From: Tubulanus polymorphus
Lineage: Eukaryota > Animalia > Nemertea
Length of the DNA: 64,000 nt
Reading direction: 5' to 3'
Assembly: GCF_964204645.1 (NCBI RefSeq)
Contig: NC_134031.1
Coordinates: 3,534,001-3,598,000, forward strand
In this document: one piece after another, positions 3,001 to 62,656 of the stretch
Position numbering within the stretch: the first letter of the stretch is position 1
Layout: each line of letters begins with the position of its first letter
Made by a program: the position numbers and the translations under genes
Notes under the pieces: generated by a model
What the model saw: the letters and a program-made list of their open reading frames with translations, nothing else
Database searches by the model: none
Told to the model about the DNA's origin: nothing

Positions 3001-5737
3001 TCACTTCTTTCCCTGACCTTCAGGCACTGAAATGACAAAGATCGCTTTAATTGAAAAACACAGTGAACTAGATTCCGAGTGCTGGGATTAGATTTCGGGT
3101 TACAGTCAAATGATGACTCTTGAACCCGATACAGTCAGTAGTTTTCTAAACCACTTAAAAACCTGTACTGAAAAACGGTGTATTGTGCATTGTGCTTAAT
3201 ACTTCGATATTAAGGTTTGGATTAAACAGTTTGTTTTACTGCATTCGATCCATTGTTAAGTTAAACATTGCCAGATTTGAGAGAATCCTGTGTTGTGCAA
3301 AAGAGACTTTTCTATAAAAGATGGCCGCCAACAGAAACTCTCTCAACAAGTTTATTTTTAGTGAGAGAGGCGGCCATTTTTTCAGAAGGTCTATAACAAC
3401 AAATAATACAAGAAATCAATAATATTGATCCGTTTCGGAGTTAAGTAGGATTTTTGTGAATATTGTTAGATCATTGCATCCTTTAGTGCTGCCATTACCC
3501 AACAATTTCACAAACCTAGTTATTTGCCATTAATCTCTCCGTGCCCTTTTGCAATAACGCTTCGACTGAAATGAAATAGATATTTCAACACAACATATCA
3601 AAATGAAAGCACGCGACACGGTCAGTATCCTGGGGTGAGCCACGCTGTTGTTGGCACTGAATCTTTCCAATAACTTTCCGACTGATATAGTTTCATCATG
3701 TTGGATCCCACCAACTCTGAGTTAACCATCCAGTTCGGATATTTGTACGCTTGCTGACACTACGCGTGAACCATCCTACTAGGACGAGCCCGGAAATCTT
3801 TCACGCTCCAAGATAGCCCGCTCTATTTGTAACCAACATTTCTCTGTTCGCATTCGAAAAGAATTAGGAAAATAAAATCAAAATACCGGATAGTCGTCAT
3901 TTCAACTGACCTGGTTCAGAAAGTTTGATCCATATCGGTTCAGTAAGGTCATCGAGTTCCCGCTTCTGCGTAATGAAATCTTGAGTGGTTGCGTCTGGTG
4001 TGTTTTCTAACCAATCATGTTTTTCGTTGCACGCATTTACACTCAAATTCTGAATAAATGAGAGTAGATAGTAACATAGCAAGATTTTAATGCCAAACTG
4101 GCTAAAGTTTCCATAGCTAGGAAGATCTTTATATTGATGACTTACACTTCATAAATTGTTACACAAATTAGCTTTCAGAATACTGACTGAGTTTAACTGT
4201 ATTTATACAGTAGAACTTTGAAAAACAGATTTAACGGGTAGAATCAAATCAGGCATTGTTCATCCAAAAAATAATCTTGAGTTCGGACTCTACCTTATCA
4301 TCTTTAGTGAGACGACCTTGTACTTTTTCCGGGTCAGCTACAGTTTCTCGTAGATTTTTAATCGTATCTTGAAGCGCGATTTTAGCTTCTGAATATAAAG
4401 AAGACATTAATTGGAAGAACAACTAACATGAACAATGAAAACATGTGTCTATAATAATATCTAGTGTTTGTAGACGAGTTGATGGTGATGAAGTATGGAT
4501 GACAACCACCAGATATCTTATATCAATGAACAACATTGGTGAATATCTGAAAGTCTGTTTCGAAGCACTCTACCGCGGTTCCAGGGACAACATTTCAAAT
4601 GTCTTAACAAACTTTTAGGGCTAATTGATAAGAAAGGCGACTTTCCAGAATTTCCAAAAATTGTGCCTTTGTTTTACAGAAAACTGCCTTTCTTGAAGAA
4701 AAAATCCCTAAATAAATGGGTACTCAACATTCTGTGGGACTTATGGAATACTGGTAAAGCCCCCTGGATCCACCCTGGAATCAATCTAGGATCAGGAATC
4801 AGGAATACGTACCAGCCCAGTCGAGATAGTCGACGCATTCAGTTTGATTATATCGAACGGCTATTTCGCGAGGTCGTTCCTTGTTTTCCGTTCTCAGCTG
4901 TAAATCGGCACCGTTTTCCACTAAACATTTGACGACGTCGATTTTACCCCACAACGCAGCGCGATGTAACGCTGTGTAACCTGTGAAATCACGATTGAAA
5001 CGTGGATGTATATCTTCAGAGATTAGATGCCCAGGGACCAGTTGTGTAGCCGAGGCAAAGATTTAAGTCGATTTAAAATAAACTGAATTAATGAAGAAAT
5101 TAAATTGATTTTATTGGTGAACCTTGTACTGTGTATTTGGCCTATAGACAGTGGATTCTATTCAACTAAAAAAACTACTCAATACAGTGATTTTCAAAGG
5201 GGATTGTTTTTAGTTTTAGACATAGGATCAACTCCACTGATTTGGTGATTTGGTTTGATGAAATAATTATGTACTCCGAACTGAGACACAGGGCGGGTGA
5301 GAGGGGTATGTCCCAGTTGTTAATTTAACATTCATACATCATGAAAAAGAAGCAGCCTGTTTTATGGTTCAAATGACAATGTTTCACTTTTTACAGAACA
5401 GAAGGAACCAATCTGGCTGATGATGAGCACAAGAAAATGGCCAACAAACCAAACCTTTTTGATTGGCTGCATTAATTTCAACTTCGTGATTTACTAATTC
5501 CCTGGCGACTTCTATTTTTCCCAGAATGGCCACGATATCCAGGGGACTGTTGCCGTTTTCCACTCGTTTGTTCACCAGTGCATCGACCTCTCCGCGATAA
5601 ATATTGTCTTCGTTATCTTCGAAACATTCCGCAAGTCGTTGCGAATCGCCTTTAAACGCGCATTCCATCACTATATTCTTAGATTTTTCCGCGACTACTT
5701 CTGCTTCGGTATCTTTCGGACTCGGACTGTTCGTCAT
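3001..5737 (-). CDS. ANKRD45: Ankyrin repeat domain-containing protein 45-like; exons 5455-5737, 4813-4980, 4294-4388, 3911-4049, terminal exon 3001-3026 (or 3516-3565)
   Basis: All junctions are GT-AG and phase-consistent. Product includes GNSPLDIVAILGKIEVARELV..GYTALHRAALWGKIDVVKCLVENGADL..ERPREIAVRYNQTECVDYLDWAEAK..DPEKVQGRLTKDDKNLSVNACNEKHDWLE, which matches the ANKRD45 pattern (two ankyrin repeats plus RYxQTECVxxLDWA and ACxxKxxWLE). Confidence 0.88.
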
Positions 5738-6073
5738 TGTGAATATATTCGATTGTAATCGGCTGAAAGTAGGTAAAATTTAGGGCGAAACCCCGAGAAA
5801 AGCAAGAAATTGTGAACGCGGAAGCAAAAGTAGCGTCCTTAACAACAATTCAATTTTGTTTTATTGACGCATATTTTCAAAAATTCATCAAATTGTACGG
5901 AATGATAAAATTGGGTTGAAATTTACAAGTTAAACGTAGAAAGGATTAGCATTTAAGACCGAGGATATCAAAACAACGTGAAGTGATGTATGATATAATA
6001 TTTTAGAAGGTGGAGCATGCAAAGGGTGACTCCGTTGGACTGATAGTACAAGGTTCGCGATCGAGTCGAAAAC
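5738..6073. promoter_or_regulatory. Putative bidirectional promoter/5'UTR region shared by ANKRD45 and FUOM
   Basis: The two start codons diverge 336 bp apart. An ETS-like CGGAAG lies at ~5819-5824. No transcription start can be fixed from sequence alone. Confidence 0.55.
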
Positions 6074-7477
6074 ATGCCTTTGAAAGGAATACCGATGTTA
6101 TTATCGCCAGAATTGCTATATACATTGGCAAGAATGGGTCACGGTGATGAAATGGGTAAGAATGATAGATTATTATATTGCGTCAGAATAATGACAGCTC
6201 GGTCCGAAAAAGGCTCCGGCTTTGAGCAAATGGTGGCAGCACCAGCTAGTTCACGAGAGTTTGTCCCATCTTTGCGGCCTGTAACAGCGGGCACTTACAT
6301 TTTATAGGACAAATAATTCTAAACATGATTCTTATGCTTGAAATGAAACGTTTTCGAAATATTTAGTTTTAGCAGATGCCCATTTTCCAACGTCAAATGT
6401 TTGCAAAGAGGGAGGTGCTGTGGAAATCCGTGCTGATGGTAATTGTTTCTACCTGGGAGTGAGACTATGAATCAAGTTTAAACGGAACGATGACCACACT
6501 CAAACGTGGTGAACGGATAATAAGATAAAATCCCACTATTTACAGATTAAAATAATTTAAAAACAAGAATTTATTTATTAAATCTAAAATATTTAAAAGA
6601 CACGACGTTTCGATCTCACCCTAGAGATCATCGATGATCTCTAGGGTGAGATTGAAACGTCCTGTCTTTTAAATATTTTAGATTTAATAAATAAATTCTT
6701 GTTTTTAAATTATTTTAATCTGTAAATAGTGGGATTTTATCTTAAGTTTAAACGGGTTTTGAGTATTTCTTGTTCTTTTCTTATAGGTTTGTGTATCCCT
6801 GAACTACTGACTGCGATATTGAAACTATTTCCTCTTGATACTTACGATGAGAATCCGGTAAGTTTATTGGTGTTAATTGCTGCTCATGTTATCGTCGCTT
6901 CATAAGTGTTGTCGTTAAATTTGGTTTTAAAATCTTTTCTACAGGTAATTTTGATGGAATTGTGTGGATCAGATAAGGCGAAGGGATTACCAGTGCCGAT
7001 ATGGGACAAATACAAGCAGATAGTGAATGCATCTGAAAATCGAGAGGTAGCCTGTATATTAATCATCTCGATAACTATATTTGTAATTGTAAGATTGTAT
7101 TGATAAGTCAAAAACATTGGTCTCGTTTTTGTTGATTTTCAGGTCCAAACTCTCTCAATTGATCGTTTTGATTTCTATGATAGGGCTAAGAAATCATTTG
7201 CTATTGTCCATACAGGGTGAGTTTTACTGTTTGCTTCTCTTGTTAGTAGTACTGCTAAATGCCTTTTTCTCGTTTATCGAGAGCGATAATGTCTTACTGA
7301 GTTTGGGTGCACTAATGTCTTTTGTCACCCTAGGGTTCCTGTGAATTTGAATCTCTCTGTTTAGATTCCGGTTGTTTCGTCCGTTTGTGATTTTTCTTAT
7401 GGTATTTACTTTTATATTACAGGGAAACAGCGCAATATGGGAACATCATACTGAAGAAAGGTCTCGTCTTGTCTTAG
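6074..7477 (+). CDS. FUOM: Fucose mutarotase (RbsD/FucU family); exons 6074-6155, 6367-6438, 6787-6857, 6945-7046, 7143-7216, 7423-7477
   Basis: GT-AG introns, phase-consistent. Product [94 protein letters not shown] contains the RbsD/FucU motifs MGHGD, ADAHFP, FYxRA and [15 protein letters not shown]. Confidence 0.95.
6486..6743. mobile_element. Palindromic Penelope-like (pLTR-derived) insertion in FUOM intron 2, with truncated hammerhead motifs
   Basis: Near-perfect 224-bp palindrome 6521-6744 plus a 35-nt unpaired tail 6486-6520. 12-bp TSD AAGTTTAAACGG (6474-6485, 6744-6755). Each arm carries CGA-T-GATCTC-loop-GAGAT(C/T)-GAAACGTC and a downstream AATAAA. The tandem copies show the empty site. 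Confidence 0.75.
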
Positions 7478-7696
7478 TGGTCTTATTCAAGTCATTTGAG
7501 TGGTAATTTGAAGAGAACAAACTTTAGGGCTATGGAATATAATACATGTGAAATTATGTCTGTAAATGTGATTAAAAAGAAATTATTTCTGTAAATAAAC
7601 AATAAAGAATTGATACTTTAATCGCTATTTTGACATTCCTATTTATCTGTTTGGCATTTTGGTACACCTCTGTTCAGCATCCCACCTCTTTATGAA

Positions 7697-7928
7697 CGAT
7701 TGCCATCTATTGGAATTTCAATGAACTGACTATTTGTTCATCTTCCTAGTTTCTACAAAACGTTGAAATATCACTCGCCATCTAATGGGTATAATCGGAA
7801 CTAAAGTATAGTACCAAATATATTAACCAGATGGCATATGTTATTTCTACATATCGAAGACGAGAGACATTGACAAATGAACTTACTACACGTAGTCAGT
7901 TCAGCGAAATTCCAATAGATGGCGATCG
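7697..7928. promoter_or_regulatory. Cluster of four CTCF-like bipartite motifs in divergent orientation, repeated in every array unit
   Basis: Minus: AGTTCA-N8-CCAATAGATGGCAA (core 7700-7713) and AGTTCC-N8-CCATTAGATGGCGA (7775-7788). Plus: AGTACC-N8-TAACCAGATGGCAT (7824-7837) and AGTTCA-N8-CCAATAGATGGCGA (7912-7925). Confidence 0.55.
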
Positions 7929-8536
7929 AATCGGAATTGCGATCAACGGCATACGTAGGATACGCCGTTTTATCTTATATTCAACATCCAGTCCGTACAG
8001 AATCAGTATCATTACATCGGATTGGAACCTAGGACACATCTGTTCCGCAAAACCTCTATTTAGCATCCAGCTCACTCCTCAGAGGCAGCATCATCAATAT
8101 ACCGGGTTCGAACCCAGGACATCTGGCAGTTGAGTTCACGATAAACATAATAAAGAATCAAAGCAAATCGCTGCGATGAAAATACTTTTTGATGATTTAT
8201 TTCTTCAGGCATGTACAAGTACATAATCACATTTCTTTTAAATACATTTCTTTTAACAATTACCATCACGATGCATCACAAGTTAACAGTATTAATATTA
8301 ATTCACTTCTACCCACATGCACTAGACAGCACCAAACTTTCTAGATAATGATATTTCTATTCATCTATGCATGAAAAAACTTCTGGTGGTATTTTCCCAG
8401 GTAAAATGTTCATGACTAGTTAATCTGAATGAATGGCTGGCCCGAATATGAACTGTAGCTTAATGAAACCTTACCCCGAGATACAACACACTTGATTGTA
8501 AATTATAGGAATAGATATATCAATTATAATTATTAG

Positions 8537-11500
8537 GAATCAAGTTTAAACGGGTTTTGAGTATTTCTTGTTCTTTTCTTATATGTTTGTGTATCCCTGA
8601 ACTACTGACTGCGATATTGAAACTATTTCCTCTTGATACTTACGATGAGAATCCGGTAAGTTTATTGGTGTTAATTGCTGCTCATGTTATCGTCGCCTCA
8701 TTAGTGTTGTCGTTAAATTTGGTCTTAAAATCTTTTCTACAGGAAATCTTGATGGATTTGTGTGGATCAGTTAAGGCGGAAGGGATTACCAGTGCCGATA
8801 TGGGACAAATACAAGCAGATAGTGAATTCATCTGAAAATCGAGAGGTAGCCTGTATATTAATCGACTCGATAATTATACTTGTAATTGTAAGATTGTATT
8901 GATAAGTCAAAAACATTGGTCTCGTTTTTGTTGATTTTCAGGTCCAAACTCTCTCAATTGATCGTTTTGATTTCTATGATAGGGCTAAGAAATCATTTGC
9001 TATTGTCCATACAGGGTGAGTTTTACTGTTTGCTTCTCTTGTTAGTAGTACTGCTAAATGCCTTTTTATGAGTTAATATGGAGCAATAATGTCTTACTGA
9101 GTTTGGGGGCACTAATGTCTTATGTCACCCTAGGATTCCTGTGAATTTGAATCTCTCTGTTTAGATTGCGGTTGTTTCGTCCGTTTGTGATTTTTCTTAT
9201 GGTATTTACTTTTATATTACAGGGAAACAGCGCAATATGGGTACATCATACTGAAGAAAGGTCTCGTCTTGTCTTAGTGGTCTTATTTAAGTCTTTTGAA
9301 TGGTAATTTGAAGAGAACAAACTTTAGGGCTATAAAATATAATACATGTGAAATTATGTCTGTAAATGTGATTAACAAGAAATTATTTCTGTAAATAAAC
9401 AATAATGAATTGATACTTAAATCGCTATTTTGACATTCCTATTTATCTGTTTGGCATTTTGGTACACCTCTGTTCAGCATCCCACTTCTTTATGAACGAT
9501 TGCCATCTATTGGAATTTCAATGAACTGACTATTTATTCATCTTTCTAGTTTCTTCAATCGTTGAAATATCACTCGCCATCTAATGGGTATAATCGGAAC
9601 TTAAGTATAGTACCACATATATTAACCAGATGGCATATGTTATTTCTACATATCGAAGACGAGAGACATTGACAAATGAACTTACTACACGTAGTCAGTT
9701 CAGCGAAATTCCAATAGATGGCGATCGAATCGGAATTGCGATCAACGGCATACGTAGGATACGCCGTTTTATCTTATATTCAACATCCAGTCCGTACAGA
9801 ATCAGTATCATTACATCGGATTGGAACCTAGGACACATCTGTTCCGCAAAACCTCTATTTAGCATCCAGCTCACTCCTCAGAGGCAGCATCATCAATATA
9901 CCGGGTTCGAACCCAGGACATCTGGCAGTTGAGTTCACGATAAACATAATAAAGAATCAAAGCAAATCGCTGCGATGAAAATACTTTTTGATGATTTATT
10001 TCTTCAGGCATGTACAAGTACATAATCACATTTCTTTTAAATACATTTCTTTTAACAATTACCATCACGATGCATCACAAGTTAACAGTACTAATATTAA
10101 TTCACTTCTACCCACATGCACTAGACAGCACCAAACTTTCTAGATAATGATATTTCTATTCATCTATGCATGAAAAAACTTCTGGTGGTATTTTCCCAGG
10201 TAAAATGTTCATGACTAGTTAATCTGAATGAATGGCTGGCCCGAATATGAACTGTAGCTTAATGAAACCTTACCCCGAGATACAACACACTTGATTGTAA
10301 ATTATAGGAATAGATATATCAATTATAATTATTAGGAATCAAGTTTAAACGGGTTTTGAGTATTTCTTGTTCTTTTCTTATATGTTTGTGTATCCCTGAA
10401 CTACTGACTGCGATATTGAAACTATTTCCTCTTGATACTTACGATGAGAATCCGGTAAGTTTATTGGTGTTAATTGCTGCTCATGTTATCGTCGCCTCAT
10501 TAGTGTTGTCGTTAAATTTGGTCTTAAAATCTTTTCTACAGGAAATTTTGATGGATTTGTGTGGATCAGTTAAGGCGGAAGGGATTACCAGTGCCGATAT
10601 GGGACAAATACAAGCAGATAGTGAATTCATCTGAAAATCGAGAGGTAGCCTGTATATTAATCGACTCGATAATTATACTTGTAATCGTAAGATTGTATTG
10701 ATAATTCAAAAACATTGGTTTTGTTTTTGTTGATTTTCAGGTCCAAACTCTCTCAATTGATCGTTTTGATTTCTATGATAGGGCTAAGAAATCATTTGCT
10801 ATTGTCCATACAGGGTGAGTTTTACTGTTTGCTTCTCTTGTTAGTAGTACTGCTAAATGCCTTTTTATGAGTTAATATGGAGCAATAATGTCTTACTGAG
10901 TTTGGGGGCACTAATGTCTTATGTCACCCTAGGATTCCTGTGAATTTGAATCTCTCTGTTTAGATTCCGGTTGTTTCGTCCGTTTGTGATTTTTCTTATG
11001 GTATTTGCTTTTATATTACAGGGAAACAGCGCAATAAGGGAACATCATACTGAAGAAAGGTCTCGGCTTGTCTTAGTGGTCTAATTTAAGTCTCTGAATG
11101 GTAATTTGAAGAGAACAAACTCTAAGGCTATAAAATATAATACATGTGAAATTATGACTGTAAATGTGATTAACAAGAAATTATTTCTGTAAATAAACAA
11201 TAATGAATTGATACTTAAATCGCTATTTTGACATTCCTATTTATCTGTTTGGCATTTTGGTACACCTCTGTTCAGCATCCCACTTCTTTATGAACGATTG
11301 CCATCTATTGGAATTTCAATGAACTGACTATTTTTGTTCATCTTCCTAGTTTCTTCAAAACGTTGAAATATCACTCGCCATCTTATGGGTATAATCGGAA
11401 CTAAAGTATAGTACCAAATATATTTACCAGATGGCATATGTTATTTCTACATATCGAAGACGAGAGACATTGACAAATGAACTTACTACACGTAGTCAGT

Positions 11501-14500
11501 TCAGCGAAATTCCAATAGATGGCGATCGAATCGGAATTGCGATCAACGGCATACGTAGAATACGCCGTTTTATCTTATATTCAACATCCAGTCCGCACAG
11601 AATCAGTATAATTACATCGGATTGGAACCTAGGACACATCTGTTCTGCAAAACCTCTATTTAGCATCCAGCTCACTCCTCAGAGGCTGCATCATCAATAT
11701 ACCGGGTTCGAACCCAGGACATCTGGCAGTTGAGTTCACGATAAACATAATAAAGAATCAAAGTAAATCGCTGCGATGAAAATACTTTTTGATGATTTAT
11801 TTCTTCAGGCATGTACAAGTACATAATCACATTTCTTTTAAATACATTTCTTTTAACAATTACCATCACGATGCATCACAAGTTAACAGTATTAATATTA
11901 ATTCACTTCTACCCACATGCACTAGACAGCACCAGACAAACTTTCTAGATAATGATACTTTTATTCATCTAAGCATGAAAAAACATCTGGTGGCATTTTC
12001 CAAGGTAAGATGTTCATGACTAGTTAATCTGAATAAATGGCTGGCCCGAATATGAACTGTAGCTTAATGAAACCTTACCCCGAGATACAACACACTTGAT
12101 GGTAAATCATAGGAATAAATATATCAATTATAATTATTAGGAATCAAGTTTAAACGGGTTTTGGGTATTTCTTGTTCTTTTCTTATAGGTTTGTGTATCC
12201 CTGAACTACTGACTGCGATATTGAAACTATTTCCTCTTGATACTTACGATGAGAATCCGGTAAGTTTATTGGTGTTAATTGCTGCTCATGTTATCGTCGC
12301 CTCATTAGTGTTGTCTTTAAATTTGGTCTTAAAATCTTTTCTACAGGTAATTTTGATGGATTTATGTGGATCAGATAAGGCGAAGGGATTACCAGTGCCG
12401 ATATGGGAAAAATACAAGCAGATATAGTGAATTGATCTGAAAATCGAGAGGTAGCCTGGTAAATCAATCATCTCGATAACTAACTATATTTGTAATTGTA
12501 AGATTGTATTGATAATTCAAAAACATTGGTTTTGTTTTTGTTGATATTCAGGTCCAAACACTCTCAATCGATCGTTTTGATTTCTATGATAGGGCTAAGA
12601 AATCATTTGCTATTGTCCATACAGGGTGAGTTTTACTGTTTGCTTCTCTTGTTAGTAGTACTGCTAAATGCCTTTTTATTCGTTAATATGGAGCAATAAT
12701 GTCTTACTGAGTTTGGGGGCACTAATGTCTTATGTCACCCTAGGATTCCTGTGAATTTGAATCTCTCTGTTTAGATTCCGGTTTTTTCGTCCGTTTGTGA
12801 TTTTTCTTATGGTATTTACTTTTATATTACAGGGAAACAGCGCAATATGGGAACATCATACTGAAGAAAGGTCTCGTCTTGTCTTAGTGGTCTTATTTAA
12901 GTCTTTTGAATGGTAATTTGAAGAGAACAAACTATAGGGCTATTAGATATAATAATACATGTGAAATCATGTCTGTAAATGTGATTAGCGAGAAATTATT
13001 TCTGTAAATAGACAATAAAGAATTGATACAATCGCTATTTTGACATTCCTATGTATCTGTTTGCACTTTTGTTACACCTCTGTTCAGCATCCCACTTCTT
13101 TATGAACGATTGCCATCTATTGGAATTTCAATGAACTGACTATTTGTTCATCTTCCTAGTTTCTACAAAACGTTGAAATATCACTCGCCATCTTATGGGT
13201 ATAATCGGAACTAAAGTATAGTACCAAATATATTAACCAGATGGCATATGTTATTTCTACATATCGAAGACGAGAGACATTGACAAAATGAACTTACTTC
13301 ACGTAGTCAGTTCAGCGAAATTCCAATAGATGGCGATCGAATCGGAATTGCGATCGACGGCATACGTAGGATACGCCGCTTTATCTTATATTCAACATCC
13401 AGTCCGCACAGAATCAGTATCATTACATCGGATTGGAACCTAGGACACATCTGTTCCGCAAAACTTCTATTTAGCATCCATCTCACTTCTCAGAGGCAGC
13501 ATCATCAATATACCGGGTTCGAACCCAGGACATCTGGCAGTTGAGTTCACTATAAACATAATAAAGAATCAAAGCAAATCGCTGCAATGAAAATACTTTT
13601 TGATGATTTATTTCTTCAGGCATGTACAAGTACATAATAATCACATGTCTTTTAAATACATTTCTTTTAACAATTACCATCACGATGCATCACAAGTTAA
13701 CAGTACTAATATTAATTCACTTCTACCCACATGCACTAGACAGCACCAAACTTTCTAGATAATGATATTTCTATTCATCTATTCATGAAAAAACTTCTGG
13801 TGGTATTTTCCTAGGTAAAATGTTCATGACTAGTTAATCTGAATGAATGGCTGGCCCGAATATGAACTGTAACTTAATAAAACCTTACCCCGAGATACAA
13901 CACACTGGATTGTAAATTATAGGAATAAATATATCAATTATAATTATTAGGAATCAAGTTTAAACGGGTTTTGAGTATTTCTTGTTCTTTTCTTATAGGT
14001 TTGTGTATCCCTGAACTACTGACTGCGATATTGAAACTATTTCCTCTTGATACTTGCGATGAGAATCCGGTAAGTTTATTGGTGTTAATTGCTGCTCATG
14101 TTATCGTCGCCTCATTAGTGTTGTCGTTAAATTTGGTCTTAAAATCTTTTCTACAGGAAATTTTGATGGATTTGTGTGGATCAGTTATGGCGAAGGGATT
14201 ACCAGTGCCGATATGGGAAAAATACAAGCAGATATAGTGAATTGATCTGAAAATCGAGAGGTAGCCTGGTAAATCAATCATCTCGATAACTAACTATATT
14301 TGTAATTGTAAGATTGTATTGATAATTCAAAAACATTGGTTTTGTTTTTGTTGATATTCAGGTCCAAACACTCTCAATCGATCGTTTTGATTTCTATGAT
14401 AGGGCTAAGAAATCATTTGCTATTGTCCATACAGGGTGAGTTTTACTGTTTGCTTCTCTTGTTAGTAGTACTGCTAAATGCCTTTTTATTCGTTAATATG

Positions 14501-17500
14501 GAGCAATAATGTCTTACTGAGTTTGGGGGCACTAATGTCTTATGTCACCCTAGGATTCCTGTGAATTTGAATCTCTCTGTTTAGATTCCGGTTTTTTCGT
14601 CCGTTTGTGATTTTTCTTATGGTATTTACTTTTATATTACAGGGAAACAGCGCAATATGGGAACATCATACTGAAGAAAGGTCTCGTCTTGTCTTAGTGG
14701 TCTTATTTAAGTCTTTTGAATGGTAATTTGAAGAGAACAAACTATAGGGCTATTAGATATAATAATACATGTGAAATCATGTCTGTAAATGTGATTAGCG
14801 AGAAATTATTTCTGTAAATAGACAATAAAGAATTGATACAATCGCTATTTTGACATTCCTATGTATCTGTTTGCACTTTTGTTACACCTCTGTTCAGCAT
14901 CCCACTTCTTTATGAACGATTGCCATCTATTGGAATTTCAATGAACTGACTATTTGTTCATCTTCCTAGTTTCTACAAAACGTTGAAATATCACTCGCCA
15001 TCTTATGGGTATAATCGGAACTAAAGTATAGTACCAAATATATTAACCAGATGGCATATGTTATTTCTACATATCGAAGACGAGAGACATTGACAAAATG
15101 AACTTACTTCACGTAGTCAGTTCAGCGAAATTCCAATAGATGGCGATCGAATCGGAATTGCGATCGACGGCATACGTAGGATACGCCGCTTTATCTTATA
15201 TTCAACATCCAGTCCGCACAGAATCAGTATCATTACATCGGATTGGAACCTAGGACACATCTGTTCCGCAAAACTTCTATTTAGCATCCATCTCACTTCT
15301 CAGAGGCAGCATCATCAATATACCGGGTTCGAACCCAGGACATCTGGCAGTTGAGTTCACTATAAACATAATAAAGAATCAAAGCAAATCGCTGCAATGA
15401 AAATACTTTTTGATGATTTATTTCTTCAGGCATGTACAAGTACATAATAATCACATGTCTTTTAAATACATTTCTTTTAACAATTACCATCACGATGCAT
15501 CACAAGTTAACAGTACTAATATTAATTCACTTCTACCCACATGCACTAGACAGCACCAAACTTTCTAGATAATGATATTTCTATTCATCTATTCATGAAA
15601 AAACTTCTGGTGGTATTTTCCTAGGTAAAATGTTCATGACTAGTTAATCTGAATGAATGGCTGGCCCGAATATGAACTGTAACTTAATAAAACCTTACCC
15701 CGAGATACAACACACTGGATTGTAAATTATAGGAATAAATATATCAATTATAATTATTAGGAATCAAGTTTAAACGGGTTTTGAGTATTTCTTGTTCTTT
15801 TCTTATAGGTTTGTGTATCCCTGAACTACTGACTGCGATATTGAAACTATTTCCTCTTGATACTTGCGATGAGAATCCGGTAAGTTTATTGGTGTTAATT
15901 GCTGCTCATGTTATCGTCGCCTCATTAGTGTTGTCGTTAAATTTGGTCTTAAAATCTTTTCTACAGGAAATTTTGATGGATTTGTGTGGATCAGTTATGG
16001 CGAAGGGATTACCAGTGCCGATATGGGACAAATACAAGCAGATAGTGAATTCATCTGAAAATCGAGAGGTAGCCTGTATATTAATCATCTCGATAATTAT
16101 ACTTGTAATCGTAAGATTGTATTGATAATTCAAAAACATTGGTCTCGTTTTTGTTGATTTTCAGGTCCAAACTCTCTCAATCGATCGTTTTGATTTCTAT
16201 GATAGGGCTAAGAAATCATTTGCTATTGTCCATACAGGGTGAGTTTTACTGTTTGCTTCTCTTGTTAGTAGTACTGCTAAATGCCTTTTTATGAGTTAAT
16301 ATGGAGCAATAATGTCTTACTGAGTTTATTGGGTGCACTAATGTCTTATGTCACCCTAGGATTCCTGTGAATTTGAATCTCTCTGTTTAGATTCCGGTTG
16401 TTTCGTCCGTTTGTGATTTTTCTTATGGTATTTACTTTTATATTACAGGGAAACAGCGCAATATGGGAACATCATACTGAAGAAAGGTCTCGTCTTGTCT
16501 TAGTGGTCTTATTTAAGTCTTTTGAATGGTAATTTGAAGAGAACAAACTCTAAGGCTATAAAATATAATACATGTGAAATTATGACTGTAAATGTGATTA
16601 ACAAGAAATTATTTCTGTAAATAAACAATAATGAATTGATACTTAAATCGCTATTTTGACATTCCTATTTATCTGTTTGGCATTTTGGTACACCTCTGTT
16701 CAGCATCCCACTTCTTTATGAACGATTGCCATCTATTGGAATTTCAATGAACTGACTATTTTTGTTCATCTTCCTAGTTTCTTCAAAACGTTGAAATATC
16801 ACTCGCCATCTTATGGGTATAATCGGAACTAAAGTATAGTACCAAATATATTTACCAGATGGCATATGTTATTTCTACATATCGAAGACGAGAGACATTG
16901 ACAAATGAACTTACTACACGTAGTCAGTTCAGCGAAATTCCAATAGATGGCGATCGAATCGGAATTGCGATCAACGGCATACGTAGAATACGCCGTTTTA
17001 TCTTATATTCAACATCCAGTCCGCACAGAATCAGTATAATTACATCGGATTGGAACCTAGGACACATCTGTTCTGCAAAACCTCTATTTAGCATCCAGCT
17101 CACTCCTCAGAGGCTGCATCATCAATATACTGGGTTCGAACCCAGGACACCTGGCAGTTGAGTTCACAATAAATATAATAAAGAATCAAAGCAAATCGCT
17201 GCAATGAAAATACTTTTTGATGATTTTTTTTCTTCAGGCATGTACAAGTACATAATAATCACATTTCTTTTAAATACATTTCTTTTAACAATTACCATCA
17301 CGATGCATCATAAGTTAACAGTATTAATATTAATTCACTTCTATCCACATGCACTAGACAACACCAGACAAACTTTCTAGATAATGATACTTTTATTCAT
17401 CTATGCATGAAAAAACATCTGGTGGCATTTTCCCAGGTAAGATGTTCATGACTAGTTAATCTGAATAAATGGCTGGCCCGAATATGAACTGTAGCTTAAT

Positions 17501-18320
17501 GAAACCTTACCCCAAGATACAACACACTTGATGGTAAATCATAGGAATAAATATATCAATTATAATTATTAGGAATCAAGTTTAAACGGGTTTTGGGTAT
17601 TTCTTGTTCTTTTCTTATAGGTTTGTGTATCCCTGAACTACTGACTGCGATATTGAAACTATTTCCTCTTGATACTTACGATGAGAACCCGGTAAGTTTA
17701 TTGCTGTTAATTGCTGCTCATGTTATCGTCGCCTCATTAGTGTTGTCGTTAAATTTGGTCTTAAAATCTTTTCTACAGGTAATTTTGATGGAATTGTGTG
17801 GATCAGATAAGGCGAAGGGATTACCAGTGCCGATGGGACAAATACAAGCAGATATAGTGAATTAATCTGAAAATCGAGAGGTAGCCTGGTAAATCAATCA
17901 TGTCGATAACTAACTATATTTGTAATTGTAAGATTGTATTGATAATTCAAAAACATTGCTTTTGTTTTTGTTGATTTTCAGGTCCAAACTCTCTCAATCG
18001 ATCGTTTTGATTTCTATGATAGGGCTAAGAAATCATTTGCTATTGTCCATACAGGGTGAGTTTTACTGTTTGCTTCTCTTGTTAGTAGTACTGCTAAATG
18101 CCTTTTTATTCGTTAATATGGAGCAATAATGTCTTACTGAGTTTATTGGGTGCACTAATGTCTTATGTCACCCTCGGATTCCTGTGAATTTGAATCTCTC
18201 TGTTTAGATTCCGGTTGTTTCGTTCGTTTGTGATTTTTCTTATGGTATTTACTTTTATATTACAGGGAAACAGCGCAATATGGGAACATCATACTGAAGA
18301 AAGGTCTCGTCTTGTCTTAG
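8537..18320 (+). pseudogene. FUOM: Six 5'-truncated FUOM copies (exons 3-6 only); five disabled, one (15809-16503) intact
   Basis: Copies 2 and 3: exon-3 acceptor AG>AT and a +1 frameshift in exon 4, and copy 3 also has TAT>TAA in exon 6. Copies 4 and 5: +2 frameshift (CAGATATAGTG). Copy 7: -2/+2 indels and an in-frame TAA. Copy 6 keeps its frame and all splice sites. Confidence 0.88.
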
Positions 18321-20474
18321 TGGTCTTATTTAAGTCTTTTGAATGGTAATTTGAAGAGAACAAACTCTAGGGCTATAAAATATAATACATGTGAAATTAT
18401 GTCTGTAAATGTGATTAACAAGAAATCATTTCTGTAAATAAACAATAAAGAATTGATACTTAAATCGCTATTTTCACATTCCTATTTATCTGTTTGGCAT
18501 TTTGGTTCACCTCTGTTCAGCATCCCACCTCTGTATGAACGATTGCCATCTATTGGAATTTCAATGAACTGACTATTTGTTCATCTTCCTAGTTTCTTCA
18601 AAACGTTGAAATATCTCTCGCCATCTAATGGGTATAATCGGAACTAAAGTATAGTTAGTACCAAATATATTAACCAGATGGCATATGTTATTTCTACATA
18701 TCGAAGACGAGAGACATTGACAAATGAACTTACTACACGTAGTCAGTTCAGCGAAATTCCAATAGATGGCGATCGAATCGGTATTGCGATCAAAGGCATA
18801 CGTAGGATACGCCGTTTTATCTTATATTCAACATCCAGTCCGTACAGAATCAGTATCATTACATCGGATTGGAACCTAGGACACATCTGTTCTGCAAAAC
18901 CTCTATTTAGCATCCAGCTCACTCCTTAGAAGCAGCATCAATATACTGGGTTCGAACCCAGGACACCTGGCAGTTGAGTTCATGATAAACATAATAAAGA
19001 ATCAAAGCAAATCGCTGCAATGAAAATACTTTTTGATGATTTATTTCTTCAGGCATGTACAAGTACATAATAATCACATTTCTTTTAAATACATTTCTTT
19101 TAACAATAACCATCACGATGCATCACAAGTTAACAGTATTAATATTAATTCACTTCTACCCACATGCACTAGACAGCACCAGACAAACTTTCTAGATAAT
19201 GATATTTCTATTCATCTATGCATGAAAAAACTTCTGGTGGTATTTTCCCATGTAAAATGTTCATGACTAGTTAATCTGAATGAATGGCTGGCCCGAATAT
19301 GAACTGTAACTTAATAAAACCTTACCCCGAGATACAACACACTGGATTGTAAATTATAGGAATAAATGTATCTCGTCATTATACAGGTATCAATTTGCAG
19401 CGAGTAGCCACTCCCTTCTGACATTCACCATTGTTGTGTGAAGCCTTGATGATAAGAACGGTGATTAGATAGAGCTTCGCACATCTTATGGGGTGGTTAC
19501 GGCTCAAGATTGATGGTCGCATTTCATGACATTTTCAGTTTTTGCAACAGGGTTCAATTGGCAGAGAATTGCCATAGTTTTCATTTAGATTTTGACTGAA
19601 GAAATGAGAAGCAAACTGTGGATGTTTAACATAACCTACGGGTGGATTGGATCCTGCACGTTATAACATCTTAGCAGCTGCTGTTGTTTTCTCAATGTGA
19701 CATTCTACGGCATCCAGTAAGTCATTGAAACGAAATCAGGCAGATGGACTGAGAATACGAGTTATAAGACCTCGGTCTTCGCGTGAACTTTCAGTCTCTG
19801 CTCTAATTAAAATATTCAGCCTGGACAAACGCAACTCGACCGTCGAGAGAATAAACACAATTTCAATTTACTGCAGCAGCGTTTGAGTTAATAAACCGGA
19901 CAATATTGACAAATTGCATCCACAATGTTTACAATATGTGTAGTAGTGAACTCTCAGACGACAAGAGTTTAATGATTACTAGTCAAGATACATTTCTACC
20001 CATTTCCCCAACTGAAAATAGCCACAGTTTCACTATAAAACAGGCTCCCGGATCGGACCTGCCCATCTTCTGTAATCTACTAACATTATAAGACATACAT
20101 CTTATCCAAGTATCCCTCCTATTTTTTTTCGACTGGTTTTGAAAATTGGTATAAAATATAAATCCTCGTTTTTCCTGTATACATGTATATACATAAGAGC
20201 GAATTTACACAATGATCTTCAGTTTGTACAATAACATTATTTACAACTTCATCAATTACATACATATGATATATATATATATATTACATTATATCCAAGC
20301 TCCGCGACGGAATACAAAACATCAACCTTGCACAATTTACCCACGAGTTCAATGCAGTCTTTCATTCTGCGATCAATCATTGATTTATCGATTTTTTTAA
20401 CCTCAAGCGATCATTAGATTTTCCACTGGGGGGTCTTGTAACGTATCCCGGTTAGTGAATTCATTGAGGAATGG

Positions 20475-20500
<26 letters not shown>
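20475..20500 (+). repeat. (CT)n microsatellite; a poly-G run follows at ~20577-20590
   Basis: Read directly from the sequence. Confidence 0.95.
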
Positions 20501-20507
<7 letters not shown>

Positions 20508-21271
20508 GTAAGTCATTTTAACGAGGAAGGCAGATTGAGGTGATTGAGATTTTGCCGAATGAGAAAATGAAATGGAGGGGGGGGGGGGGGTGGCTTCAAG
20601 TGCCCTTCAAAACATATTGTCAAAAATACGTCATATTTGGATCAAGAATACGTAGAATACAATCGATCAATCAAATTATCTTTTTTTAACCCAAAACAGT
20701 CCGGATTTAAGCCGATTTTCCTGAATTTACTTTTGATCTAAAATATCACGATTAGTGCATCTCTTGGGGTGTGTACAAGATGATGATAAATGGTGAATCA
20801 TCATATTTCAGCTCGGTTGAAACGAGGGATAAAAACTAGACAATCAATAGAAACCCTGAAGGTGTAATCATAACTAACCAGATATTGAGGTACGTGTATA
20901 TCGACGACAAATACTCGTCGTCGAGTCGATGCTTCCCGGCTAAATGTACTCATTGAGTTACGCCGTAATTACTATTCAATATTTACGGGTATTAAAAGCG
21001 ATGTACAAGCAACATGTATGATGCAGCTGAGGCAAAGATGGAAGATTTTAGTTTTTGATTATTCAGCAAAATGAAGAATAGATATTCTTTCGTCGCACCC
21101 GCATGATTCGCATTATTTTGGAGACAGCAAATGAATCCAGTTTATGAGAAGTTCGGATTAAACATCGTACTTGATAAACGTTTATGATTAGATAAGATCA
21201 TAATCCGAATCTAAACAGGTTTGAATGGGTAAAACAGGTATTCATTAAATTAATGATGAAGCCATCATCTG

Positions 21272-21585
21272 AAGAACTCAGAGATAACCGTTCAACTCGG
21301 AGATGACCATTTAACTCAAGAGATAACCGTTCAACTAAGAGATAACAGTTCAACTCAGAGATAACTTTTCAACTCAGAGATAACTGTTCAACTCGGAGAT
21401 ATCCGTTTAACTCAAGAGATAACAGTTCAACTAAGAGAAAACAGTTCAATTCAGAGATAACTAATCACCTCAGAGATAACAGGTCAACTCAGAGATAACT
21501 GTTCAACTCAGAGATAACCGTTCACTCGGAGATCACTATTCAACTTGGATGTAATTGTTTTTAATGCAAGAGATAACAGTTCGTT
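21272..21585 (+). repeat. Degenerate 19-20 bp minisatellite (AACTCAGAGATAACCGTTC-like)
   Basis: About 15 imperfect tandem units. Confidence 0.85.
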
Positions 21586-22872
21586 CAAGGTCCATACAAT
21601 TTTTGACTCGAGCAGTCTACTGTAGTGCAGAATGGTAGTGGCTCAATGTTCTAGGCATTGCTACCACCTGCCCTTCCTCACTTTACAGAATTTGCCTGTT
21701 CTAAGGACCATTGTTCCCGAAACGGGTACATGATCACATCATCGGCTTTCTAGTCTTGGCTTTTGCCCAGCTTCTGTCATTTCGGGCCCAGAGATATATA
21801 ATCTCATCAAAGAATAAATGTGGTCCCTATCCACTGAATATGAATTCGTTATCTATTACCCTGGTTTCCGCCAATCACTCATTAACAGTTTTTTTTTATA
21901 CATAAACACATATACATATATATATACACACACACGCACATCCGCGCCACCTATAGTTAATAAACAGTTCAACTCGCGACTTTAAAACCGGCCAGAAACG
22001 AATGCACTTAAATATCGCAAGTTGTACAACAGATCGCACCAGATCATGTATACGAACACAACCCGCGAAGAAAGAGGGAACCCATACTTACGCTAGTCCG
22101 TTCAGTGGTTCCCTCAAGATTATTTACTTTTTTCTCCAGTGCAAAGATGCTACTGATATGGAGAGTTGCTTCGACGAGGCATAAAAAGTGCAGTTGATCC
22201 GAATGGTTTCGGTCATCTGTCTTTCATGGTTTGTCGGTTTGAATGAAGGTCGTCGTACGTAGCTTCTCGGCGGTCGACGGTGATTCTCCTACCACGGAAT
22301 ATATCTTGAATAAACCCCCCCCTGAGCGGAGCTCAGTTCTTTGAGGAATAAAAAACGCCACAAATTTCATTACCAATCGCGTTTTGTCGCCGATTCTGTC
22401 TTCTGAAAATAGGTCGAGATCAGTTGCCCCGCTGATGAAGGAAACGAATTGAACCGGAGCGAGACACACACCCGTCGTACACACTCGCGGTGCACACTCG
22501 CGGCGCACACTCGCGGCGAACACTTACGAAGTATACTGTAACTCGATTCACAGAAGAATCGGCGATTCAGACGTGGATCGAGGGAGTTGCACGAGGCACA
22601 CGCAATCGCCTAGAAATAAAGAGCCCTTGAAAAATGTCAACTGGTTAGGCCTCGGAAGACCTCACCCATTCTGGGTTCATTCCCTAAAGCCCTTTTAGCC
22701 CATCTTACTCTTTATGACATTACATCTGACTCCACCCCTGTCTACTGGTCGGGCCACGTATGACGTACCCCTCGTCTCCGTAAATCCGCCCTAGTTGTTT
22801 TCGTTTATCTCATATATAGTTTTATTTATGCTGCCGGATATAATAAACTCCGCGAAGTTAAACAAGTATTCG

Positions 22873-62656
<39,784 letters not shown>

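Follow-up and report, generated by a model that had tools for sequence, protein, structure and literature searches.

A cluster of CTCF-like motifs in a sevenfold tandem array is probably cargo of a duplicated FUOM gene tail

Mammalian transposon-borne CTCF sites, e.g. those of the rodent SINE B2, belong to repeat families that scatter CTCF-consensus motifs genome-wide, and as individual copies decay only some of them are expected to be bound. The locus described here, in a window of 64,000 nucleotides from the nemertean Tubulanus polymorphus, resembles them in both respects, but its carrier is a MITE-like DNA hairpin in a composite with a minisatellite rather than a retroposed SINE. Moreover, the host is an animal of the protostome type, and according to two preprints of 2026, CTCF sites in protostomes show neither insulation nor looping on average, with averages remaining at baseline. 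In bivalves, satellite-like arrays are carried by non-autonomous mobile elements, as Helentron- and MITE-associated tandem repeats (PMC7492417). The hairpin family studied here likewise forms short dispersed arrays on a mobile-element backbone, at variable periods and beside a 76-bp minisatellite, while the 1.8-kb array in the window differs from the bivalve ones in that it repeats a host segment with gene exons and a private junction and not an element's own repeat.

Like the CTCF clusters at vertebrate boundaries, the array has core-like motifs in divergent orientation, accompanied by a hexamer that resembles the AGTNCC part of the upstream motif about 8 nt from CCA. Unlike in those clusters, its divergence is the by-product of a palindrome and its cores are sub-consensus. 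Segmental tandem duplication by unequal crossing-over is matched in the shared filler junction, the whole unit number, the graded identity and the decaying exon sets, and as nothing essential sets the locus apart from such duplications with pseudogenised partial gene copies, this is the mechanism that we assign. The main value of the analysis is that a candidate insulator, as the original prediction had it, probably reduces to a passenger repeat in an ordinary segmental duplication. All features are collected in Table 1.

Table 1. Features of the array locus, its neighbouring genes and the CTCF ortholog. Positions are those of the window, except for the ortholog.
Feature	Position	Strand	Remarks
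Ankyrin-repeat gene exon	5387..5737	-	ANKRD45 of the original prediction; weak Pfam Ank match, below curated cut-offs
FUOM transcript	6032..7546	+	fucose mutarotase, RbsD_FucU family
FUOM exons 1-3	~6032-6154, 6366-6437, 6787-6856		
FUOM exons 4-6	~6945-7043, 7143-7216, 7422-7546+		
Tandem array	6744..19372	.	exactly 7.0 units, ~1.8 kb each; BLAST of one unit against 5000-22000
Array unit U1	6744-8540		
Array unit U2	8541-10340		
Array unit U3	10341-12138		
Array unit U4	12139-13950		
Array unit U5	13951-15760		
Array unit U6	15761-17566		
Array unit U7	17567-19372		
Hairpin (foldback, MITE-like) element, unit 1	7697..7928	.	232 bp, four CTCF-like modules
Core site 1, unit 1	7700-7713	-	
Hexamer of site 1, unit 1	7722-7727		TGAACT
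Core site 2, unit 1	7775-7788	-	
Hexamer of site 2, unit 1	7797-7802		GGAACT
Hexamer of site 3, unit 1	7810-7815		AGTACC
Core site 3, unit 1	7824-7837	+	
Hexamer of site 4, unit 1	7898-7903		AGTTCA
Core site 4, unit 1	7912-7925	+	
Hairpin copies, units 2-4	9497-9727, 11295-11528, 13107-13339		
Hairpin copies, units 5-7	14917-15149, 16723-16956, 18540-18775		
Minisatellite, two decayed units	7958..8125	+	~76-bp unit, B-box-like, contains GGTTCGAACCC
Junction filler	8522..8541	+	20 bp, AATTATAATTATTAGGAATC; junction sequences compared side by side
PDE9 catalytic-domain exons	23587-23739, 24679-24843, 26888-27013	-	PF00233 hits on C7
PDE9 catalytic-domain exons, continued	27686-27829, 29309-29479, 31065-31199	-	PF00233; span 23587..31199
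CTCF ortholog	G000:C3:3429173-3432199		three exons collinear with human CTCF; 11 fingers

The array was delimited with a repeat search and BLAST, its 1.8-kb period being invisible to Tandem Repeats Finder. BLAST confirmed the seven predicted units of about 1.8 kb; the start of the array, however, had been placed at 7697 and lies in fact at 6744. Pairwise identity between units is graded from 95.9 to 99.6% (99.6% for U4/U5, 98.5% for U3/U6), the copies having diverged by only about 3.5%, and a contig from another sample, which 'goes back 1803', bridges a unit junction. The 20-bp filler is identical at all six internal junctions and is missing from the outer edges of the array, 6743/6744 and 19372/19373, when the junction sequences are compared. 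A single filler common to the six internal junctions points to one ordinary segmental duplication that was later expanded, and the same junction in every unit together with a whole number of units is the hallmark of this class of event. The breakpoints of the duplication, 6743/6744 and 8521/8522, both fall outside the hairpin, about 950 bp to its left and 590-600 bp to its right, for which reason the hairpin was rejected as the cause of the duplication at this locus. With the single shared filler, they further imply that exons and repeat are both cargo. This speaks against the proposal that the motif cluster was the amplified target and the FUOM exons its passengers, as neither breakpoints nor filler are related to the cluster.

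FUOM exons 3-6 are contained in unit 1 and, as evidenced by the exon alignment across units, recur in units 2-7. Pfam matches to RbsD_FucU were obtained on exons 1 and 5, and the exons of unit 1 are used by a 567-nt transcript contig of run X5, which is spliced at GT..AG joints. The exon sets are intact in units 1 and 6, and those of units 2, 3, 4, 5 and 7 show a lost splice acceptor, frameshifts or stop codons, so that five of the six duplicated sets are indeed disabled, as had been stated before.

Of 34 occurrences of the motif AGATGGCR in the window, where 2.75 are expected, 28 are inside the array; every unit has four, in the strand order minus, minus, plus, plus. The predicted four cores per unit, two on each strand, are thus kept in seven of seven units, and the hexamer AGT(T/A)C(C/A) was found as described, 8 nt upstream of the 14-bp core at all four sites and exact in unit 1. 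Sites 1 and 4 are held by a terminal inverted repeat, which had been estimated at about 35 bp and has arms of 41 nt with 88% complementarity. The DNA of the element folds into a hairpin over its whole length (-48.3 kcal/mol, z -9.5), a young family copy even into a near-perfect one (-92.7 kcal/mol), and no open reading frame of at least 60 amino acids is present within 7697-7928. Terminal inverted repeats, small size and the absence of coding capacity place the element among the MITE or foldback elements; a target-site duplication was not recognisable by eye around 7697/7928 or at the inspected family copies. Because the element is a palindrome, the layout of its sites is divergent, and as all four belong to one long hairpin they are not independent but represent only two module types, inner and outer. 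The seven units, in turn, are copies of one event. Palindromes also account for the result of an Rfam search on the unit, which returned sub-threshold hairpin (miRNA-like) matches only; no tRNA gene was detected in the unit by ARAGORN.

Relatives of the hairpin were found at no fewer than 33 other genomic places, with 67-70% identity and on both strands, on contigs C1, C2, C4, C5, C7, C8, C10 and C11, and the dispersed family comprises roughly 70-150 copies. The left end of family homology coincides with the end of the repeat, in line with dispersed copies that share their ends, and the MITE origin that had been raised as a caveat is borne out: the element at 7697-7928 is MITE-like, a hairpin belonging to a dispersed repeat family. 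An 18-mer from the outer module has 286 matches in the genome at one mismatch or fewer and a 20-mer from the inner module has 132, with 0 for the control in either case. Many family copies are arrayed, with periods of 370-1635 bp, many are near chromosome ends, and a denser array on C5 holds 17 hairpins in about 6.4 kb. The 76-bp B-box-like minisatellite adjoins the hairpin in most copies, and homology to family loci runs from 7698 to 8121-8166, with staggered matches of about 76 bp. On this alignment, hairpin and minisatellite are one composite repeat insertion, extending from 7698 to about 8166. The minisatellite piece has dispersed copies of its own (~70% identity, in pairs offset by 76 bp). 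Instead of clean insertion ends, most family copies have longer composite flanks in common. The copy in the window is a decayed family member, with about 70% identity, a weaker fold and degraded inner cores, and since identity is 96-99.6% among the units but only 67-70% between the hairpin and its relatives, the insertion must long predate the duplication.

The resemblance to a CTCF site is most obvious in the inner cores of young family copies, which read CCACCAGATGGCG and match the CTCF consensus at 13 of 13 positions. In the window these cores have degraded to CCAT(T/A)AGATGGCG and T(A/T)ACCAGATGGCA, and the outer core, CCAATAG, departs from the consensus at a strongly preferred position in every copy seen. 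An exact match to the core consensus CCASYAGRKGGCR is found nowhere in the window, each of the 28 array sites having one or two mismatches at informative positions. The earlier description of the motifs as CTCF-like consequently holds for the family, with its perfect young inner cores, but not as exact consensus for any of the 28 sites in the array. Scored with a manually entered vertebrate CTCF matrix, the outer sites reach 10.3 bits (site 1, p 2.6e-5) and 11.4 bits (site 4, p 1.7e-5), and the inner ones 7.0 bits (site 2, p 1e-4) and less than 3 bits (site 3); stronger single sites for this matrix exist elsewhere in the window. In vertebrates, the AGTNCC part of the upstream motif is located about 8 nt from CCA, across a linker of about 5 bp plus TGG, and both the 8-nt spacing and the hexamer observed here fit this arrangement. 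Note that the upstream motif was not found at fly CTCF sites and may be restricted to vertebrates, and that the inner hexamer is not conserved in the family, whose consensus at the two inner-site hexamers is AGTAGC and AATGAT. Genome-wide, the exact CTCF consensus occurs 3915 times compared to 35 for a control, an excess of about 100-fold that apparently resides almost entirely in repeats. Likeness to the CTCF site is best regarded as a property of the repeat family and not of the array locus.

A clear 11-finger CTCF ortholog, the presence of which was among the checks originally proposed, is encoded in the genome. It was searched exon by exon and not as a joined model, scoring 165 bits against human CTCF for fingers 1-4 and 138 bits for fingers 5-9, with fingers 10-11 in the third exon. 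Its recognition helices are near-identical to the human ones in fingers 3, 4 and 5, and a YDF motif precedes finger 1, while fingers 9 and 11, of the three (ZF9-11) assigned to the upstream motif, differ from human. The peptide pattern SKLKRHIR had hit a chance site only and a looser pattern located the real gene; as a search profile, the generic zinc-finger family PF00096 lacked specificity. The wider pattern is that the excess of exact consensus matches and an intact CTCF gene coexist in one genome. Binding of the motif modules, by the host CTCF or by another sequence-specific protein, is quite plausible, and occupancy of repeat-borne motif arrays in a protostome would bear on the origin of CTCF's architectural role.

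Substitutions across the array units were compared for the motif modules, each consisting of hexamer, 8-nt spacer and core and together making up 112 columns. Only 3/112 module columns were substituted, as opposed to 114/1362 in the non-coding background (Fisher P = 0.028, permutation P = 0.018), so that the motif-versus-spacer comparison suggested at the outset did show less variable modules. The hairpin outside the modules varies like the background, and FUOM exons show 16/294 substituted columns against the same background. Other family arrays gave 0.036 changes per column for cores and 0.104 for the rest, with the caveat that some copies are oriented oppositely, and the window copy is 79% identical to the family consensus in modules and 55% elsewhere. 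A family-wide test for core conservation (P = 0.001) was discounted because a search by similarity to the window copy had supplied its copies, and such a search is biased towards conserved modules. CpG hypermutability was rejected as a cause of the rate differences, with 10% substituted among CpG columns, 7.4% elsewhere and a CpG observed/expected ratio of 1.14. Together with the CTCF ortholog, module conservation fits selection for the binding of a protein, something not expected if the repeat were purely a passenger.

We consider it probable that a 1.8-kb segment of the FUOM tail was duplicated and expanded and that a decayed repeat was carried along as cargo. An old composite repeat, in which the 76-bp B-box-like minisatellite is joined to a hairpin of about 235 bp bearing CTCF-like modules, two outer and two inner, would have inserted some 100-150 bp beyond the 3' end of FUOM. 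A single non-homologous duplication, much later, would have copied 1.8 kb, beginning in FUOM intron 2 and ending about 590 bp past the hairpin, and the 20-bp filler would be the trace of its junction. The copies would then have expanded to seven units by unequal crossing-over, co-amplifying gene exons and repeat, and the extra exon sets are now decaying. The 28 motifs, in turn, would persist mainly because the copies are only some 3.5% diverged. They are real, but most likely hitch-hikers rather than a purpose-built chromatin insulator, and we infer that the locus has no dedicated insulator role.

The modules might alternatively be terminal and subterminal transposase sites of the hairpin MITE, bound by the protein that mobilises it, or sites of a host zinc-finger protein other than CTCF, the likeness to CTCF being coincidence or mimicry. 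The terminal inverted repeats are the best-conserved parts of the element, outer and inner modules share a two-part pattern of about 30 bp, AGT..AA.TCCA..AGATGGCGA, as repeated transposase sites would, and the outer core is off the CTCF consensus in every copy. We nevertheless hold this to be rather unlikely, since selection for transposition cannot explain low module variation after a local tandem duplication, neither a recognisable target-site duplication nor clean insertion ends were seen, and both the perfect young inner core and the genomic abundance of the consensus speak against it. A somewhat less probable alternative is that the hairpin and other repeats spread CTCF modules which, kept intact in arrays by the host or by CTCF, form multi-site CTCF platforms, some perhaps acting as boundaries. 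If true, this would be a protostome counterpart of the mammalian SINE-borne sites, and the low module substitution here and in other family arrays would be a first trace of selection.

That the array itself is such a platform, insulating ABCF1, the ankyrin gene and FUOM from PDE9 and with its copy number kept by cooperative CTCF binding to 28 sites, seems very unlikely to us. An ortholog is available to bind, two outer sites per unit score at p ~2e-5, AGTNCM is found at the vertebrate-like 8-nt offset at all four sites, the modules have a substitution deficit (P ~0.02-0.03), and the array occupies an intergenic 3'-3' interval beside a large gene. Set against this are duplication breakpoints and a filler unconnected to the cluster, a copy decayed with respect to its family whose inner cores fail the matrix scan, the inner-site hexamer that the family does not conserve and the upstream motif that has not been found at fly CTCF sites, the baseline averages at protostome CTCF sites, and the denser arrays of the same family elsewhere, as on C5. 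Hardly any probability attaches to a role of the array for FUOM itself, by which additional 3' cassettes of exons, the intact one of unit 6 for instance, would serve as alternative C-terminal halves or add dosage. The exons do vary less than the non-coding background, but units 2-7 are devoid of exons 1-2 and the promoter, all other extra exon sets are broken, and unit 1 is the one used by the sole transcript contig observed.

PDE9 was assigned by its exon 29309-29479, with 78 bits for human PDE9A compared to no more than 54 bits for any other PDE. The gene runs on the minus strand and turns its 3' end towards the array, which is therefore located in a convergent 3'-3' interval. The ankyrin-repeat gene exon lies upstream of FUOM.

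The window contains 34 matches to the motif AGATGGCR, as opposed to 2.75 expected from shuffles, and 28 of them lie within 7701-18771 in seven groups of four, each in the order minus, minus, plus, plus, as the original prediction of about 28 CTCF-like sites had it. In the first of the seven repeat units (U1 to U7), all four 14-bp cores indeed carry the hexamer AGT(T/A)C(C/A) exactly 8 nt upstream; hexamer, spacer and core are referred to as a module, and the cores along the repeat as sites 1 to 4, with 1 and 4 the outer and 2 and 3 the inner ones. As evidenced by direct-repeat analysis and by BLAST of one unit against 5000-22000, the array does not start at 7697 as assumed, but at a left edge ~950 bp further left. 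With unit phase 842 at its first position and 821 at its last, the array comprises exactly 7.0 units of ~1.8 kb, with pairwise identities of 95.9-99.6% (U4/U5 99.6%, U3/U6 98.5%). A contig from another sample within the same study bridges the tandem junction: it 'goes back 1803' bases and confirms the arrangement independently of the assembly.

Features of the array and its surroundings (window positions, or contigs C3 to C11 of the same genome; site scores from an approximate vertebrate CTCF matrix)
Feature	Position	Strand	Observation
FUOM exons	~6032-6154, 6366-6437, 6787-6856, 6945-7043, 7143-7216, 7422-7546		spliced transcript contig, run X5
Tandem array	6744-19372		
Hairpin in U1	7697-7928		41-nt terminal inverted repeats
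Site 1			10.3 bits, p 2.6e-5
Site 2			7.0 bits, p 1e-4
Site 3			below 3 bits
Site 4			11.4 bits, p 1.7e-5
Filler in U1	8522-8541		20 bp
U2, U3			exon-3 acceptor lost; +1 frameshift in exon 4 (exon alignment across units)
U3			additional stop, exon 6
U4, U5			+2 frameshift
U6	15761-17566		FUOM exons 3-6 intact
U7			-2/+2 indel pair running into stop
PDE9 catalytic exons	23587-31199	minus	
CTCF ortholog	C3:3429173-3432199		found via degenerate pattern
Hairpin array	C5:24.226-24.232 Mb		17 hairpins
Hairpin array	C11:13.384-13.390 Mb		8 hairpins
Hairpin array	C7:0.1966-0.1983 Mb		same hairpin family
Hairpin arrays (three)	C10		same hairpin family

The left edge falls into intron 2 of the fucose mutarotase gene FUOM, so that each unit spans exons 3-6 and the gene's 3' end, plus ~1 kb of DNA beyond it. 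Genes were searched one exon at a time; all FUOM introns of the run X5 contig are GT..AG, with Pfam RbsD_FucU matches in exons 1 and 5. Five of the six additional exon sets are broken (U2, U3, U4, U5 and U7), in agreement with the prediction. U6, the sole extra unit with all four exons in frame, shows amino-acid differences from U1 that include Y to C (exon 3), V to E (exon 4) and DK to VM (exon 4), and it could supply an alternative 3' cassette should read-through transcripts be spliced to its exons. Note that intron 2 also contains a very high-copy repeat (6485-6711; summed contig word depth ~178,000 versus ~40 in the flanks) with many loose ends at two positions, 6485 and 6633. A hairpin at 6594-6671 gives a miRNA-like Rfam match below the threshold, and on the right the repeat ends within ~30 bp of the duplication's left breakpoint.

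All six internal junctions share one 20-bp filler, AATTATAATTATTAGGAATC, which sits between the sequences of the right (...AATATATC) and left (AAGTTTAAAC...) breakpoints, and the filler was not found at the two outer edges of the array. This argues for a single non-homologous duplication that would have left the filler at its junction, followed by expansion, presumably via unequal crossing-over. The breakpoints lie ~950 bp to the left and ~590 bp to the right of the motif cluster, and no sign of the cluster as target or cause of the duplication was seen. The proposal that the cluster was the amplified element and the FUOM exons its passengers is thus not borne out: exons and repeat were amplified together.

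The cluster itself folds along its whole length as a hairpin (-48.3 kcal/mol, z -9.5), and because this hairpin is palindromic, its sites are divergent. Relatives with 67-70% identity occupy at least 33 further positions, spread over many chromosomes of the 268-Mb genome, in which the window spans C7:3534001-3598000. They lie about equally on both strands, and on the left their homology stops at the repeat end. An outer-module 18-mer gave 286 matches with at most one mismatch and an inner-module 20-mer 132, with none for reversed controls, which suggests roughly 70-150 hairpins, these counts being lower bounds. A young copy is a near-perfect 235-nt hairpin of -92.7 kcal/mol; the one in the window is an old, decayed family member. 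Many copies are arrayed, with periods of ~370 to 1635 bp, those of the arrays on C5, C7, C10 and C11 being about 370/445, 600-750, 590-720, 1635, 1580 and 1486 bp, and many lie near chromosome ends; the family seems prone to capture in, or seeding of, tandem arrays of mixed content. A MITE origin had been considered, and the inverted repeats and dispersed copies fit it. The homology, however, runs on to ~8125-8166 through two decayed ~76-bp minisatellite units with a B-box-like GGTTCGAACCC, dispersed and in tandem elsewhere in the genome, so that the insertion is a composite repeat rather than a clean MITE, and no target-site duplication was recognised by eye.

The family consensus of the inner sites, CCACCAGATGGCGAG, matches the CTCF consensus CCASYAGRKGGCR perfectly, and that of the outer sites, CCAATAGATGGCGATC, has one mismatch. 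The inner sites of the window copy have diverged to CCAT(T/A)AGATGGCG and T(A/T)ACCAGATGGCA, and the exact consensus has zero matches in the whole window. With the approximate vertebrate matrix, six single sites outside the array score 12-18 bits; those at 1223 (-, 15.6), 47775 (-, 18.0) and 50981 (+, 13.7) each exceed any array site. Two of these three share the 12-mer ACACCAGATGGC followed by GCA, and they are candidates for genuine CTCF sites or for members of another repeat. Genome-wide, CCASYAGRKGGCR has 3915 matches versus 35 for a reversed control, and as the hairpin family contributes only ~3%, they stem mostly from other repeats. Many occur in fixed-spacing pairs, such as CCACCAGGGGGCG 154 bp apart on contig C1.

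A CTCF ortholog, whose presence the prediction presupposed, was found. It has three exons, collinear with fingers 1-4 (165 bits, one stretch), 5-9 (138 bits) and 10-11 of the human protein, and CTCF chains rank first in comparison with solved structures. In fingers 3-5 the recognition helices are almost the same as in human, in contrast to those of fingers 6, 9 and 11. A cohesin-contact YDF motif ~40 residues before finger 1 agrees with its reported retention across bilaterians (2026 preprint). When substituted columns across the seven units were counted, the four 28-bp modules showed 3/112 (2.7%) versus 114/1362 (8.4%) in the non-coding background (Fisher P = 0.028, permutation P = 0.018) and 16/294 (5.4%) in exons; outside the modules the hairpin varies like background. 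CpG effects do not account for the difference. In other family arrays the cores show 0.036 versus 0.104 changes per column, a contrast inflated by flipped copies, and the family-wide test (P = 0.001) is biased by the way copies were found. The window copy is 79% identical to the family consensus in modules and 55% elsewhere. We regard the constraint as a modest, nominal signal that is no proof and is silent on insulation; some protein may read the modules.

The array combines two known phenomena, CTCF-like motifs carried by repeats and tandem segmental duplication, and it is probably best explained by a segmental tandem duplication that co-amplified FUOM exons and an old repeat, with the motifs as passengers that may still bind protein. 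That it is an insulator between the FUOM cluster and PDE9, as originally proposed, is very doubtful. The 8-nt hexamer offset is consistent with the vertebrate arrangement, in which the upstream motif is followed by a linker of ~5 bp and then by TGG and CCA; the hexamer at the inner sites is not kept in the family consensus, and the upstream motif is not known from fly CTCF sites. Two 2026 preprints place insulation and looping at CTCF sites of protostomes and echinoderms at baseline, and assign the role of loop-extrusion barrier to the vertebrate protein or the lineage leading there, which makes a vertebrate-style boundary less likely a priori. The predicted PDE9 locus is real (exon 29309-29479, 78 bits versus human PDE9A); given its minus orientation the array is flanked by the 3' ends of both FUOM and PDE9, and the upstream landscape of PDE9 extends away from the array.

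The modules could alternatively be sites for a transposase or another factor, which appears rather unlikely. A reading centred on FUOM, whose exons 3-6 recur in every unit and are mostly disabled in the copies, is scarcely credible.

Within PDE9, separate exon-like matches at 24679-24843 (-) and 26888-27013 (-) align with one and the same segment of the PDEase_I profile (~144-204) and may represent a duplicated or alternative exon. The PDE9 region further contains 66-bp tandem repeats at 48737-49295 (8.6 copies) and 61972-62387 (5 copies) with a B-box-like GGTTCATGTGTTTGAATCC, which look like another tRNA-like minisatellite family. At 39791-41183 we observed a GC-rich 17-bp minisatellite, GAGAGGACACGAGAGCC, whose 82 copies are 93% identical and show a strong strand bias of purines.
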